A program made the translations under genes and the position numbers. Source: Epiperipatus broadwayi (lineage: Eukaryota; Animalia; Onychophora). From it: a stretch of 64,000 bases of DNA. Numbering within the stretch: the stretch's first letter is position 1; each line of letters starts with the position of its first letter. Shown here piece after piece: positions 15,886 to 54,848 of the stretch. The stretch is taken from positions 15,500,001 through 15,564,000 of the forward strand of contig JAQFVV010000010.1 of assembly GCA_028023455.1 (NCBI GenBank), in the 5' to 3' direction. The notes under the pieces are model-generated. The model saw only the letters and a list, made by a program, of their open reading frames with translations, had not been told where the DNA came from and did no database searches.

Positions 15886-16720
15886 TAACAATTCGCCAAT
15901 TGCTAAAACAGAGAATCTTTAATAAATAAAACCACTTTTGCCAAGCACTTTCAACTCCTACGAGTCCTTATCAAGGCAGTATAAAAAAATCCTATTTTTC
16001 TCCTAAGCGATAAATTCAAAGTTTCATTGCATTGGCCAGGAACAACTAATCGGAAAGCTGGTTAATTTTGAATTTATAGCACAAGATGAATTTTGTATAA
16101 GATATGATTCTTTAATCTTGCGTTTTTTTTATTGTGTGTTTCATGCATTAATATTGTAAAATCCTTTGGACTACATATATGGCCTGTACTACTTTGGTGA
16201 ACATAAAAAGCCGAATAAACTGTATCATCTTCTCTTGCTCTATTATACATATATTTATGTTGTTATAGGCGATATTTAATATTTGTCTTGGTTTCCCCAA
16301 CATATATTTTACTACAATTTATTTGTGGATATCTAATAGAATACATCAGACTGTTCTTATCCCCTTTACTCAATACTCCCTTAGAATTATATATTAATCT
16401 ATTAAGGTTAGGCAGAGTCCTCTATGCCAGTCGAAAATCATGACTTAAAACTTTTATTATCTTTTTATTAATATTGGATGGTTTAGTATTCACATTTACA
16501 TTACCATTATTAGAATGTTGTTTATAATGTTTCAATACAATAGATAATAGCCTTTGCTTATTATAACCCACTTGTATCAAATCTTGCATATAACAATTAA
16601 TATTATCTTTCTTAAACATTTTATTTGAACACAGTCGTTGATTACTTGTTAAAAAAGCTCTAAAACCAGCCAATTAGTTATCAATGACATTCAATGTCTA
16701 TGTGTATTGGTAGTGAAAAT
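15886..16720 (-). mobile_element. 5'-truncated Penelope-like element (RT C-terminus, GIY-YIG endonuclease, 3' hammerhead)
   Basis: A mostly continuous frame: ORF 16422-16673 (QRLCSNKMFKKD...DLIQVGY), TAG, then RTLPNL...LMYSIRYPQINCSKIYVGETKTNIKYRL*QH...SAFYVHQSSTGHICSPKDFTILMHE (frameshift) RKIKESYLIQ..AIN. This is the standard PLE GIY-YIG pattern; followed by an HHR and ATTAAA. Confidence 0.9.
15939..15978 (-). ncRNA. Minimal type-I hammerhead ribozyme motif, U3-A8 core variant (family 3)
   Basis: Minus strand: UGCC UUGAUAA G GACUC-GUAG-GAGUU GAAA GUGC UU/GGCA. Helix I UGCC/GGCA, 5-bp helix II, helix III AGUGCU (AGCGCU palindrome with CpG decay); predicted cleavage between 15943 and 15942. 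Confidence 0.75.
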
Positions 16721-27000: not shown

Positions 27001-27103
27001 GTCAAGCGTTGGTGGTCGAGTGGTCAGCACAACTGCTTTACAAGCAATTGTCCCGGGTTCGCTTCCCGGCTGATGTTATGACACATGAGAAGAAAAAAAA
27101 AAT
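27001..27103 (+). mobile_element. tRNA-derived SINE, copy 2, with A-rich tail
   Basis: A-box TGGTCGAGTGG, B-box GGTTCGCTTCC, poly(A) end. Confidence 0.8.
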
Positions 27104-28581
27104 AGTAATTAAATATAAAATCCATAGAGATATTGTTAATGATATTATACATATGAAATGATATTTTGAAATACTCTATATATTTACATTGACATCTGTT
27201 GGACAGCAATTAAATGCAGAGAATAATACTAATATAGAGCTCTGAGGATTTTTTCAAATAGTCATTGTAAGTAATTGCTTTTAAAGAACAGTGGAGTATG
27301 GATTACTTCCGTAAGAATATCAAAAAAATATTGCAGTAATTGAAAGAATACAACATTCTGACATTATCAAATTGAAGTATTCAAATAATTATTCATATTG
27401 GCTAGAAACTTGTTTTCAGATAAAGTGGAGACTTTGAAATACAGCTTATCATCACAACAGTCAATATTTTAAAGAAATTAAAGATAAAAATAAAGCTACT
27501 GTAGTATTTATTTAGTTTGAGAATAAGTTTTAATTTTTAAATGTTAAAATATAATAGGCCTAGTTTAAATTTATCTCTTTATTTGTATTTTATATTTTCC
27601 ATTTTAATTTTGAAGGATTGAACGTGTTTTAATTAAAATGGTAAAAATCTATAGTTTTATTAATTTGGCATTGCTATTAAGAGGATAAATAACTTATTTA
27701 CATTTTAAGAAGTTTAAGATTTCTGCATTGGAAGAATTTTGAGTTTTTACCTGAATTTTCATTACATATATAAAATGTTTGTATTATTTATTTTTTGCAA
27801 TATAAACCATATAGTTTGTAAATTTCATTATGCAAAAATTAAGCACATCTATGGTTCCATAAGTATGTATGTATTACTAATTCAAAAATAACATCTTTAT
27901 AGGAATAATAATTTTACCATCATTATATTATTTTTACCCTTACTCTTTAGACTAACTTTTTATTACTTTTTAAAAAGAATTAAAGCCATCTATTTTCAAA
28001 ATCTAATATTTTTTCTTTTTAGTAAAAAAATTTTTTTCCCCTACTTCTAAATAATGAAATACTTAAATTTTTTAATGTATTTTTTTAATACTTGTTCACT
28101 CTTTTTTTGTTATTATGTTTTCAAATTTTTTATCTACCTTATAACGACAAACTTATTTTTCCCCAAAATCCAATCACACAACCAATTCTAATGTTAAAAG
28201 TAAGTTTAATTTTCCATATATTATCTTCACTTAACTTATTCATAGTATTTTAATTCATTAAATGCCTAACTAATTCATTGATCATTTTTTAAAATTATTA
28301 TATATGTTGTCAGTTAACAGAGAAATGAAATGGGGAAGACCCAAAAACAATGAAAGAAATGAATAAAATGGATTATGCATTTAAGAATCACAAAAAAAAA
28401 TTAGGTATAAATAATGATAAAAATATATAAACTGCTAAACATCACATGATCACCATTTCTTACTTTCTCAAGCTGTTAAAACAGGCAAAACTCTCCATAT
28501 AGTAGTGCCACTCAGTGCAAGCCAGAGTAATCAATGGATGCCAGAAGGCTTGTGCATAAAATCCCTATCTAGTGCCTACTC

Positions 28582-28640
28582 ATCCAATATTCCCAGACTA
28601 GTTTCTAGCTTGTGACTTTCGTCAGTGAAGAGCTTTGGAT
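28582..28640 (-). ncRNA. Type-I hammerhead motif, family 1 (left arm)
   Basis: AUCCAA AGC UCUUCA CUGACGA A AGU-CACAA-GCU A GAAA CUAGUC/UGGGA AUA UUGGAU. Helix III is the perfect palindrome ACUAGU; distal helix I AUCCAA/UUGGAU; predicted GUC cleavage between 28596 and 28595. Confidence 0.8.
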
Positions 28641-29133
28641 CTAAGAGCACTGCACCTAGATCGTAATAAGATCTATTGCATCCCTCCAGCAGCTACCTTT
28701 TATCTCAATTACAAAACTGAGTTTAAAATTTGACTAGATGTTAGGATTTAGTGCAACCCTCCAGCAGCCATCTTTTATCTCAACTTAACTACAAAACTAT
28801 GAGTCTAAAACTGAAAACATATTTTCAATCCAAGCTCATTAGTTTATATAGTCATATAGGTCTGAACTCAACTTGAGCAAGCATAAGAAGTGGTGAGCAT
28901 GAGTGTTTAGTGGTTTAATACTAATCCTGCTAATAGGATAGTGGTGGCTGTGGTTATCACCAAAATGTATGGGTACTAAACTGAGTTTAGATCTATATGA
29001 CTATATAAGCTAATGAGCTTGGATTGAAAATATGTTTTCAATTTTAGACTCTTAGTTTTATAGTTAAGTAGTAATAAAAGGTGGCTGTTGGAAGGTTGCA
29101 TTAGATCCTAAGATCTAGGTGCAGTGCTCTCGG

Positions 29134-29192
29134 ATCCAAGACTCCTCACTGACGAAAGCCACAAGCTAGAAATTAGTCTGGGAATATTGGAT
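29134..29192 (+). ncRNA. Type-I hammerhead motif, family 1 (right arm)
   Basis: AUCCAA GAC UCCUCA CUGACGA A AGC-CACAA-GCU A GAAA UUAGUC/UGGGA AUA UUGGAU; core at 29149-29155, GAAA at 29169-29172, predicted cleavage after 29178. Confidence 0.8.
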
Positions 29193-30687
29193 GAGTAGGC
29201 ACTAGATAGGGATTTTATGCACAAACCTTCTGGCATCCATTGATTACTCTGGTTTGCACTGAGTGTCATTACTGCATAGAGAGTTTTGCCTGTTTTAATA
29301 TATAAACTGATTGGACAATAATAAAATAATATTTGAGCATATACTCTTTAAATAATATTTTTCCTTTTGGCTATTTTCAAATCATAGGTCTTTTTCAAAT
29401 AATAGTTCACAAAATTCAACAACTTCTTGCTTTCTCCCCATTCTTTCTAAATTGAAATCCTCTGTAAAAATTGATCCGATTTACTTTTAAAAAATGTTTT
29501 GCATCAATTCTGAGCAATAATTTGGGGTTGCAATCGATTTTTTTTTTGGGTCAGTGCTTTCAAAAAATTTAATGGAATTTTATTAGTTTTATATTTACAA
29601 TTGTAAATTGTATATGATAGTTTTGCAAGAATTCTTATTGTTAATTTACATTTCTTTATTTTTGTTTTGACATAGAAATATTTTAATATAAAAATAAGAC
29701 TATTTTCTACTTTTCATGGTAATTTTAACTTGAATATTTTTTTCAGCAGAATTACCTCCATGAAATCAAATTATGTCTCCATTTTTCTGAATCATTAACA
29801 TTTGTTTTATGTATAAACATTTACAATATTCATATTTTTCTTCAGGCCATAACAAATTTCTTATTGCAAAATATGTGTGTATATGTGAATAGAATATTTT
29901 TATGGATAAAACATATTTTTGCTTATGAGTTTTAATAAGAAGCTGTTTACTGTCTGCACTTAAATTCTCTTGAAAAGGAAATTGATTTGCTGTATTTTCC
30001 ATTGCATGTTTTGAAATTAGCCAGAAGTAAATATAGTTAATTTTTATTGTATTATTTTCATAGAATTTAGATAAGAGAATTTCTGGGTGACTTTTAAATA
30101 CCTAATAAAAGAAATATAGCATTTTTTATCAAGAGGATTTAACTAAAGACAGTTATTATTAGTTCAAATAAGTTTCTATCATATATACAGAATGCTGTTT
30201 CAATTTTTGAATTTTCATCTTTTAATTTACAAAATTATGAATATTAGGTTTATTTAGGATACATATTTTTACACAGAAGAAAACATTGAGATATGAACAC
30301 CATATGTGTATACACAAATTTATGAGCTTTGTAGAATCATTGTTTCATCTTTGCAAGAATTTTCTTAAATATAATTATTATTTAGAAATATAAACTTTTA
30401 TAAAATGATTTGATTCTTAGAACTTTTATTATCTTGTCTTAATATTTTATACAGATTTTGAAAGTTTCTCTAAGATCCAACTATGTCCACATTATCCACC
30501 TTTTTTTTTTTTTTATCTCCACTGGTTAGAACTATCTTCAATTCCGATTTTTAGATCTTATGTAAAATTTTTATATTAATGAATTTATTTTTTAAAATGC
30601 TGCGTTACTTAATCATTCTGGATTAGTAATATTACCAAATTCACCACTTTCTTTATTTTGCAGTAATATCTTATATCTTATATAAAT

Positions 30688-31935
30688 GCAATTTATCCAC
30701 CCTACTTCAAAATCTTTTATTACACACATATGCATACACAATCTTGTGTTTCAATTGCCCTGCAGTCTTCTTCAGAGCTATGATATAATGAACAAAATAA
30801 AATACATAACCATATAAATAATATCATTAAAAATGTAAACAAAGTTAATAAAATAATAAAAAAATTATGTAAAATATAATAAAACAAATAAATATAATCA
30901 AACCCAAATAAAATAATCCAGTTATTATAAAATAAAATATACAATATAAAAGAAATATAAATTATACGTGTGTATTCCTGATTGTATATATACCTATTTA
31001 TAAACAACTTAATATAAATATATTATTTTTAATAATCTCCTAATTACTTCTATTATAGACTTAAAACTTTAGTTTTATTAGCTCGCTCTATCTTAATAAA
31101 ATACTTAATAATTTTATTTTCATATAATTCTCAGTTCAACCTCGATTCATTTATTAATATTCTTTTTAATTTTTAAATCTTATAATATTTATTGTTTTGT
31201 TATTCATTCTTCTGTTATATTTTATATTTATCTTTTTTTTAATATATAAAGTATTAATAACAGAAAAATAAATAAAAAAATAATAGATATTATATGATTT
31301 AAAAATTAAAAAAAATATTAATAAATGAATTAAGGTTGAACTGAGAATTATATGAAAATAAAATTAAGTATTTTATTAAGGTAAAGCTAATAAAACTAAT
31401 GTTTAAGTTTATAATAGAAGTAATTAGGAGATTATTAAAAATACTAAAAATGAATACTATATTTATATTAAAAGGTGTTAGGTGTTCATAAATATGTATA
31501 TATACAGTCAGGAATACATGTGTATATTTTACTTTATATTAACTGGATTATTTTATTTGGGTTTCATTATATTTATTTCAGTTTTATTATGTTTTGTTGT
31601 ATTTTTTTATTTATTGTTTACATTTTTTATGGTATTATTTATATGGTTATGTATTTTATTTTGTTCATTATATCATAGCTTAGAAGAAGGCTGTAGGACA
31701 GTCGAAATGTAAGATTGTGTATACATATATGTGCAATAAAAGGTTTTTTTGCTAAAAAGTATTTGAAGTATAATGGATAAATTGCTGGATTAGTAAGTAA
31801 ATGAATCATAGCTCTGAAGAAGACTGCAGGATAGTCGAAATGTAAGATTGTGTATGCATATGTATGCAATAAAAGGTTTTTTTGCTAAAAAGTGTTTGAA
31901 GTAGAATGGATAAATTGCTGAATGTAAGTGAATAT
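30688..31935 (+). mobile_element. ~1.1-kb palindrome with a tandemly duplicated HHR-containing end (family 2, Penelope-type termini)
   Basis: 30688-31219 is the reverse complement of ~31258-31785. The terminal unit (HHR, AATAAA, gataaattgc) is repeated with a 133-bp period (catagct at 31674 and 31807). Confidence 0.88.
31807..31852 (+). ncRNA. Minimal type-I hammerhead motif, family 2 (best-preserved copy)
   Basis: CAUAGCU CUGAAGA A GACUG-CAGGA-UAGUC GAAA UGUA/AG A UUGUG; 5-bp helix II, helix III AUGU (ACGU with CpG decay), predicted cleavage after 31844. Degenerate copies at 31674-31719 (+, core UAGAAGA) and 30737-30782 (-). Confidence 0.7.
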
Positions 31936-53251: not shown

Positions 53252-53583
53252 AGCCACTAAGCATCACATGATCACCATTCTTTATGCTTACATAAGCTGT
53301 TTACACAGAAGCAAAACTATCAATACAGTAGCACCACTCAATGCAAGCCAGAGTAATCAATGGATGCAAAAAGGTTTGTCCATAAAATCCCTATTGCCTA
53401 CTTATCTAATATCTCAGATTCAAGGCTCCTCACTGATGAAAATCACAAGCTAGAAACAAGTCTGGGGATATTGGATGAGTAGGCACTAAATAGGGATTTT
53501 ATGCATGAACCTTCCTGCATTCATTGATTACTCCAGCCTGCATTGAGTGGCGCTACAGTATTGACAGTTTTGCTTCTGTGTAA
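53252..53583 (-). mobile_element. Centrally deleted copy of family-1 fold-back with tail
   Basis: Tail 53252-53300, palindrome 53301-53583; the sequence jumps from the left arm to the right arm of the 28.4-kb copy. Confidence 0.88.
53418..53476 (+). ncRNA. Hammerhead motif, family 1 (partly decayed)
   Basis: AUUCAA GGC UCCUCA CUGAUGA A AAU-CACAA-GCU A GAAA CAAGUC/UGGGG AUA UUGGAU; one helix II mismatch and a broken helix III palindrome. Confidence 0.6.
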
Positions 53584-53740: not shown

Positions 53741-54694
53741 AAACTAATGCTAATTTTAATAAATTTTATTTTTTGTACTGTATAAATTATTTTCGGAAAT
53801 TTCATCAATGAATCATTACCAATTTAGACTATATTATTGCATATATAAATATATACAGACATACCTATGTGCATACATAATGTAATAGAATTTAAGATCT
53901 TTTTTTTTTGTATTGTAAATACACATTTTCTTGATTAATATATTACACATACTGCATAAAAAAAATGGTTGTTGATAATTTAATTTTTTTAGATTCAAAA
54001 TTTTTGATTTTGGAATTTTAAAGTACAGTAGTTGTTACTAACAACACAAGAAGCTATGATTAAAATGTTAATAACAATAATAATCATACAGCATGTTTGG
54101 CTTCTGTTTTAACTGGCCAATTTTAATAATCATGATTAAACAGTAGAATTGAACTCTCATTTCTACGGAGTCTTGACTGTCTTTTTCTAAACGATGTCTA
54201 GACTGAAAATCTGTATTTAATCTATAAGAGCCAATAATTGCTCTTATTTATATAATAATTATATAAACAATTGGTCAATAAAAATTAAATCAAAAGAGAT
54301 CGTTGGATGCACTAATTAACAAATTCTCATGTAACATATTTAAAGTTTATATTATTGTGGCACACATGTCTATTTTGTACTTATAGCCTTATATATATAA
54401 AAAAATACAAAAAAAAAAGCTTCTCAAGAAACTTTTTATTATTTATGTTTTATTTTAATCCAATGTCGACTTGATTTTTTTTGAGGTGCTTTTATGAAGT
54501 CCTGTCCAAAATATGGCTGCAAGGCCTTAACAATTTTTATGCTGCCATTCTGTAAATTAAATATATATATAAACATATTATTGATAAAGACTGCATTATA
54601 AATTTTGAAGTTAATTATCTGTAAACAGTAAAAAAGAAGCAAAAATAAAAACCAAACAAAAAATACATTTCATTTAAAACATTTTAAATATTAC

Positions 54695-54848
54695 ATCACA
54701 TGATCACCATTATTTATGCTTACACAAGCTGTTTAAACAGAGACTCCATATAGTAGGGCCACTTAGTGCAAGCCAAACCTTCTTGCATCCATTGATTACT
54801 CTGGCTTGCACTGAGGGAAGCTAATATATGGAGAGTTTAGCCTCTTTG
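54695..54848 (-). mobile_element. Minimal family-1 fold-back derivative (HHR deleted)
   Basis: Tail plus short arms; 15-bp direct repeat CATTTTAAATATTAC at 54680-54694 and 54849-54863. Confidence 0.88.

Follow-up and report, generated by a model that had tools for sequence, protein, structure and literature searches.

Positions 28423-29309 of a 64,000-nt stretch of the Epiperipatus broadwayi genome (contig JAQFVV010000010.1, positions 15,500,001 to 15,564,000; hereafter, the window) hold an inverted repeat that carries a hammerhead ribozyme motif on each strand. We find that this element is very probably a non-coding, tandem-repeat retrozyme of the kind without long terminal repeats (a non-LTR retrozyme), integrated by the reverse transcriptase (RT) and GIY-YIG endonuclease of a Penelope-like element (PLE). 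We propose Penelope-type mobilisation because the footprint of the family, head-to-head copies with a tail on one side and a target-site duplication (TSD) of variable length, matches that of published PLE insertions.

The element proper (28435-29297) is an 863-bp inverted repeat bracketed by perfect 12-bp TSDs, and a scan of these 863 bp for open reading frames (ORFs) found none longer than 53 amino acids. The arms are complementary over 190 nt (28476-28665 with 29109-29298, 92%) and over 137 nt (28734-28870 with 28982-29118, 89%). The TSD, ATATATAAACTG, was read directly on both sides, and an automatic flank comparison returned a 13-nt identical string at both ends. A 41-nt tail is present on the left side only and is missing from the right arm. 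An earlier note on this DNA had described a non-coding inverted repeat of about 860 bp, a 12-bp target duplication, and a hammerhead with its core boxes in each arm, and we recovered all of them where the note had placed them. It had also reported a tail of about 40 bp on one side; this tail is indeed confined to the left, but it is not unique sequence, being homologous to the first ∼40 nt of the repeat unit. The parts of the element are as follows.

28423-28434, no strand: left TSD, 12 bp, from direct reading and flank comparison.
28435-28475, minus strand: tail, 41 nt that prolong the left antisense copy at its 3' end and match unit positions 1-41.
28476-28873, minus strand: left arm, a 5'-truncated copy of unit positions ∼109-424 (BLAST to the unit: 167-465 and 109-245).
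28582-28640, minus strand: left-arm hammerhead from the motif search, predicted cleavage at 28596/28595, helix III palindrome ACUAGU.
28874-29297, plus strand: right arm, about one monomer, ending at the upstream 3' site without the tail; its start may be 28869.
29134-29192, plus strand: right-arm hammerhead from the motif search, predicted cleavage at 29178/29179, helix III AUUAGU.
29298-29309, no strand: right TSD, 12 bp, from direct reading and flank comparison.

Both arms share the minority A-U/C7 haplotype of the family as well as a rare variant at 29183, and they carry 17 and 14 private substitutions, respectively, over 316 positions (∼5%). Because a single TSD brackets both arms and because they have this haplotype and this variant in common, the fold-back is best read as one old insertion event; two independent insertions were considered for the two arms and rejected on the same grounds. 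The locus is an old, ordinary copy without sign of a host function. The left arm contains an internal repeat of ∼79 bp, in which 28667-28708 recurs at 28742-28783, and this makes the arms unequal. An RT template jump at integration would explain the 79-nt repeat. Short re-copied segments beside the head-to-head junction recur in the family (window 28667-28783, locus L065 1501-1812, and locus L067 1454-1796), and these look like RT template jumps during integration.

We then consider the family to which the element belongs. The genome is represented by a 5.6-Gb assembly and is extremely AT-rich, the GC content being 27% both in the window and across 297 kb of scattered loci. At least 11,821 relatives of the element were found at first look, and a 30-nt pattern of the hammerhead core with three degenerate positions had 46,854 exact matches genome-wide, the reversed control having none. 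We mapped 71 loci to the right arm, read in the hammerhead sense. Neighbouring hammerheads on the same strand lay 432-466 nt apart, including one series at 456 nt. The tail corresponds by homology to unit positions 1-41; in tandem loci, the following unit physically starts with it. The 3' end of a copy falls at either of two fixed positions separated by ∼40 nt, one including the tail and the other excluding it, whereas the 5' truncation points vary, and many copies run past one unit as head-to-tail repeats. As read from this arrangement, the replicating unit is a non-coding tandem monomer of ∼430-456 nt and the fold-back is an integration product. A defined 5' end of the unit at 28874 was rejected, as that boundary reflected the query and the family is a tandem unit. 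Judged by the ends of its copies, the family behaves as a retroelement whose RNA strand is the hammerhead strand. We class it as a retroelement, and not as a miniature inverted-repeat transposable element (MITE), because of its fixed 3' end, variable 5' truncation, tandems, unequal arms, and TSDs of 11-15 bp. The end structure of the copies, one of the checks that the earlier note had singled out for its proposal, came out in its favor.

Thousands of contigs from four related organisms (runs X1, X4, X9, and X11) match the unit at 80-99%. The matches are densest over 29084-29263, which corresponds to the hammerhead and ∼70 nt after it, and the contigs contain tandem joints from 29297 to 28874 with ∼6-20 letters in between. 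By these matches, the family is abundant in at least four related organisms, and it, or at least the 29084-29263 module, is shared across related species.

To describe the usual insertion form, we drew a sample with the last 70 nt of the unit only, a procedure blind to the arrangement of the copies. Among the 29 insertions of this 3'-anchored sample, 25 were head-to-head with their 3' ends outward (minus-plus), none was tail-to-tail (plus-minus), and 4 had a single orientation. All 25 head-to-head insertions (25/25) carried a tail on exactly one arm, and the tail measured 30-40 bp. In a sample anchored on the hammerhead core, 8 of 12 insertions were head-to-head, and neighbouring hammerheads on opposite strands were arranged minus-plus in 28 cases versus plus-minus in 2. 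Flanking direct repeats of at least 11 bp were found in 19 of 42 insertions; these were mostly 12-15 bp long, with a range of 11-15 bp. Arm lengths were unequal within insertions and differed between loci. The earlier description of a fold-back retroelement is therefore right for the usual insertion form (25/29), but not for the replicating unit, which is the tandem monomer, and the idea of PLE mobilisation put forward at the same time is supported by this footprint. Two further head-to-head insertions of the family lie in the window.

53257-53583, no strand: second head-to-head insertion, shorter, with the tail on the left arm; its right arm holds a decayed hammerhead at 53433-53462.
54693-54848, no strand: third head-to-head insertion, very short, consisting of 3' ends only, without a hammerhead.

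The inner (5') junctions of the arms were clustered along the unit (loci L064-L092 and window position 53412), with five at ∼309-311, six at 353/354, and nine at 239-248. The 309-311 cluster lies 3-5 nt past the predicted cleavage site, and symmetric cases paired positions 239 with 239, 242 with 242, 188 with 189, and 160 with 157. An AGATCT palindrome is found at the symmetric 239-242 junctions and suggests that a minority of events involved snap-back priming. A pile-up of 5' ends was rejected as proof of cleavage, since the ends cluster at 309-311 and not exactly at 306, and since other hot spots exist.

In the hammerhead motif of each arm, CUGACGA and GAAA enclose a 3-bp helix II whose loop is CACAA, and the motif further comprises a helix III region of six letters, the GUC site, and a helix I in two parts. 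The helix III region is ACUAGU in the left arm and AUUAGU in the right arm, the latter with one C>U change from the family majority. The conserved type I core (C3 U4 G5 A6 N7 G8 A9, G12 A13 A14, A15.1-U16.1, and H17) is present in both arms. In the majority form, helix III consists of one base pair, A15.1-U16.1, capped by the palindromic tetraloop CUAG. Compared to the family majority, the studied copies are slightly degraded, with a C.A in helix I of both arms and intact cores; the left-arm hammerhead has two wobble changes, one in helix I and one in helix II. A loose hammerhead pattern yielded 7 matches in the 64-kb window versus 0.9 expected.

Variation among copies bears on the fold. Genome-wide, the closing pair of helix II is G-C in 38,024 copies, A-U in 6,550, and mixed in 2,280, a fully compensatory switch between the two main subfamilies. 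In the sampled copies, 13 of 424 columns were polymorphic, and the two helix II columns were completely associated (39:30:2). A set of 82 distinct copies had GC in 56, AU in 22, and other combinations in 4 at this pair, and 92.7% of the cells of the 15 proposed hammerhead pairs were paired. None of 500 shuffles reached a covariation score as high as the observed one, a measure that is inflated by the kinship of the sequences according to the tool's own warning; the helix II switch represents one evolutionary event. This compensatory switch speaks for master copies having been selected for the fold, and because of it we predict a dimer-type ribozyme function. The hammerhead would most likely act as a dimer in tandem transcripts, cutting out unit-length RNA, by analogy with newt and axolotl retrozymes. 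From the sequence, we conclude that the motif is of a genuine hammerhead type that was kept by selection in master copies, and for which cleavage is predicted.

Several results weigh against a PLE-mobilised family with a working hammerhead. The Rfam Hammerhead_1 model (RF00163) found no match at its gathering threshold of 34 bits, none at an E value of ≤10 on 1.1 kb around the element, and none on the family majority haplotype; a 76-nt slice of the window copy scored 12.6 bits (E = 1.5), which is below the threshold. The family is not classifiable by its Rfam score because matches are thus absent or sub-threshold. Helix II does not abut A9 and G12, as one A stands on each side (A9/10.1 and 11.1/G12); equivalently, 10.1 and 11.1 form an A.A mismatch. 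In the 82 distinct copies, helix I showed no two-sided changes, and it is without independent covariation support because its changes are one-sided or wobble. The hammerhead was no better conserved than the rest of the unit, with a majority frequency of ∼0.90-0.95 in all bins; flat conservation is expected for dead copies, so this comparison is uninformative either way. None of 20 GIY-YIG loci shares its 3' end or sequence with the retrozyme unit. The one PLE examined in vitro inserted without needing hammerhead cleavage, and no reads ended at the cleavage site (PMC11167929). Finally, the runs from related organisms are assembled contigs of uncertain type, from which RNA ends are not readable. 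The type I hammerhead that the earlier note saw in each arm hence stands in its core and fold, but not in the abutment of helix II to A9 and G12 nor at the Rfam threshold, and the Rfam search that it had recommended failed at that threshold. Likewise, its expectation of conservation across copies was borne out for the core and for helix II covariation, but not for helix I covariation.

These points bear mostly on an alternative that we regard as unlikely but which deserves a serious hearing, namely, that the hammerhead-like motif does not cleave now or never did, that it is a structural or RT-recognition element or is simply inherited, and that the family spreads via uncleaved multimers. The sub-threshold Rfam score and the A.A at the base of helix II fit a non-cleaving motif, but axolotl hammerheads that have either a U.U at the helix II base or the same 1-bp helix III with a palindromic tetraloop do cleave, best as dimers (PMC7229834). 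In vitro, the minimal hammerheads of metazoan PLEs show only poor cleavage (PMC4209133), and the dispensability of cleavage for PLE insertion points the same way; against this, every invariant core nucleotide is kept in 46,854 copies, and the compensatory helix II switch is what selection on the fold in master copies would leave. Many genomic copies are longer than one unit, so templates that were uncleaved or circular must have been in use.

As for the machinery, the genome contains 10,242 candidate GIY-YIG Penelope ORFs, with open frames of up to 901 amino acids, and the 20 compared loci carry different hammerhead variants. PLE insertions are known to have, alongside the element, an inverted copy that is truncated at its 5' end, as well as partial tandems, a tail of 30-40 bp confined to one end, and a variable TSD (PMC3846280, PMC8557442). 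Moreover, both DNA strands are cut and extended by a purified PLE protein, which initiates reverse transcription at two neighbouring internal sites, the tail being the interval between them (PMC11167929). We propose that the PLE endonuclease would make a staggered double-strand break at the target and that both exposed 3'-OH ends would serve as primers for reverse transcription, with multimeric or circular retrozyme RNA as the template. Of the two cDNAs, one would start downstream, at the tail site, and the second at the upstream site; they would then meet 5' to 5' and be joined, sometimes after a template jump. By our own reasoning, a staggered break whose two 3'-OH ends both act as primers should give the minus-plus arrangement and never the plus-minus one. 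The fold-back, and hence the presence of a hammerhead on each strand, would be a by-product of integration. Folding of a read-through transcript of the whole element gave a minimum free energy of -537 kcal/mol (z = -51.7) with both hammerheads fully duplexed; the prediction that such a transcript would form a long hairpin trapping both hammerheads, and not active ribozymes, is thermodynamically sound.

It is improbable that the arms are 5'-truncated pseudo-LTR pieces of a protein-coding PLE, as opposed to members of a separate ORF-less family. PLE ORFs are abundant in the genome, and PLE insertions are mostly so heavily 5' truncated that copies of coding PLEs mostly look non-coding too (PMC8557442, PMC4209133). 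Yet the longer copies of this family continue as ∼450-nt head-to-tail repeats and never into an ORF, and similarity to the unit downstream of the ORF was found in 0 of 20 GIY-YIG loci. A DNA transposon of the MITE type, or an inverted duplication that arose later in the genome, with incidental hammerheads, can be set aside as extremely improbable and was rejected, for the terminal inverted repeats and TSD resemble those of a MITE only superficially, while the arms are whole element copies, unequal and variable in length, that share one fixed end, the family has single as well as tandem forms, the tail is one-sided, 3'-anchored insertions are minus-plus and never plus-minus, and TSDs vary from 11 to 15 bp, so that the symmetric termini and fixed-length TSD that the earlier note had named as evidence against its proposal were not seen.

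Some other features were also noted. A second hammerhead type is present in the window at 30735-30775 (minus strand) and 31814-31854 (plus strand), and also near position 2809 (minus strand) of locus L058, where it adjoins a GIY-YIG locus. It consists of CUGAAGA, one extra A, a 6-bp helix II, and then GAAA, and it matches the published Penelope minimal hammerhead; its helix II is GACUGC/GCAGUC in L058 and is decayed in the two window copies. Short broken ORFs at window 16074-16673 (minus strand) have no sequence similarity to the retrozyme unit. A tRNA-Val (anticodon TAC) was called at window 27005-27078 (plus strand) by ARAGORN and by Rfam (36.4 bits), 1.3 kb upstream of the element; it may be a tRNA gene or belong to the head of a SINE derived from a tRNA.

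So far, the case for a link between animal retrozymes and PLEs has been built on co-occurrence, hammerheads in common, and similarity of pseudo-LTRs. A retrozyme family in which the complete Penelope footprint is very frequent gives direct structural evidence of the mobiliser, and it offers tens of thousands of natural integration products in which the priming of both DNA ends can be studied. In addition, a hammerhead family of ∼47,000 copies goes unreported by the standard Rfam model. Taken as a whole, the family may be a genome-scale record of Penelope integration acting on a retrozyme, with coordinated priming, guided junctions, and an overlooked active hammerhead variant, a reading that we put forward tentatively and consider unlikely. 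If it is true, the one-tail rule (25/25) would mean two RT start sites, one per DNA end, in a coordinated and asymmetric double-strand priming. The recurrent junctions (∼309-311, 353/354, and 239-248) would then mark structure- or palindrome-guided joining, and the 309-311 group could mark the use of hammerhead-cleaved RNA. Similarly, this hammerhead, whose 3-bp helix II has an A on either side, could be an active form that escapes current models in spite of its ∼47,000 intact copies.

Finally, we compared the element with known systems. Metazoan non-LTR retrozymes are tandem repeats of 150-450 bp with type I hammerheads (PMC7229834), and they have been proposed to be PLE derivatives on the basis of co-occurrence and pseudo-LTR similarity (2026 preprint, 10.64898/2026.07.22.740005). 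Like newt satellite 2 and the axolotl Rtz_331 and Rtz_353, our family has a non-coding, AT-rich tandem unit of a few hundred nucleotides, with one type I hammerhead per unit, a very high copy number, and TSDs longer than 4 bp (PMC7229834). It shares with HHR_Amex1 the one-bp helix III capped by a palindromic tetraloop, which implies dimer action, and with HHR_Amex2 a weak helix II base, a U.U mismatch in Amex2 and A.A here; that an active axolotl hammerhead tolerates such a U.U mismatch is established (PMC7229834). Those retrozymes are expressed as unit-length linear and circular RNAs. Our unit reaches the upper limit of their published sizes, and helix II of our hammerhead has only 3 bp with an A on each side (PMC7229834). 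The family also differs in its head-to-head layout with a one-sided tail, which is not mentioned for retrozymes in PMC7229834 or in 10.64898/2026.07.22.740005.

That layout is instead the one of PLE insertions, with which the family shares heavy 5' truncation, partial tandems, an inverted copy, a tail at one end, and a variable TSD (PMC3846280, PMC8557442, PMC11167929). Unlike PLE insertions, the element has no RT/GIY-YIG ORF, and its 3' end is unmatched to an autonomous PLE in the 20 loci compared. In Schistosoma, minimal hammerheads were reported in 2014 to occur as pairs on opposite strands, separated by 100-700 bp (PMC4209133). Our hammerhead resembles the minimal hammerheads of PLE pseudo-LTRs by its extra nucleotide between A9 and 10.1, by G10.1-C11.1 in the majority haplotype, and by its palindromic helix III region (PMC4209133). 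It departs from them by a 3-bp helix II in place of 6-8 bp, by a long, two-part helix I with an internal loop in place of a short one, and by an extra A before G12 as well; an extra nucleotide 5' of helix II is a described feature of PLE hammerheads, whereas one on the 3' side is not described (PMC4209133). The element is a further case of two known kinds, the non-LTR retrozyme and the Penelope-type insertion, and not a new class.

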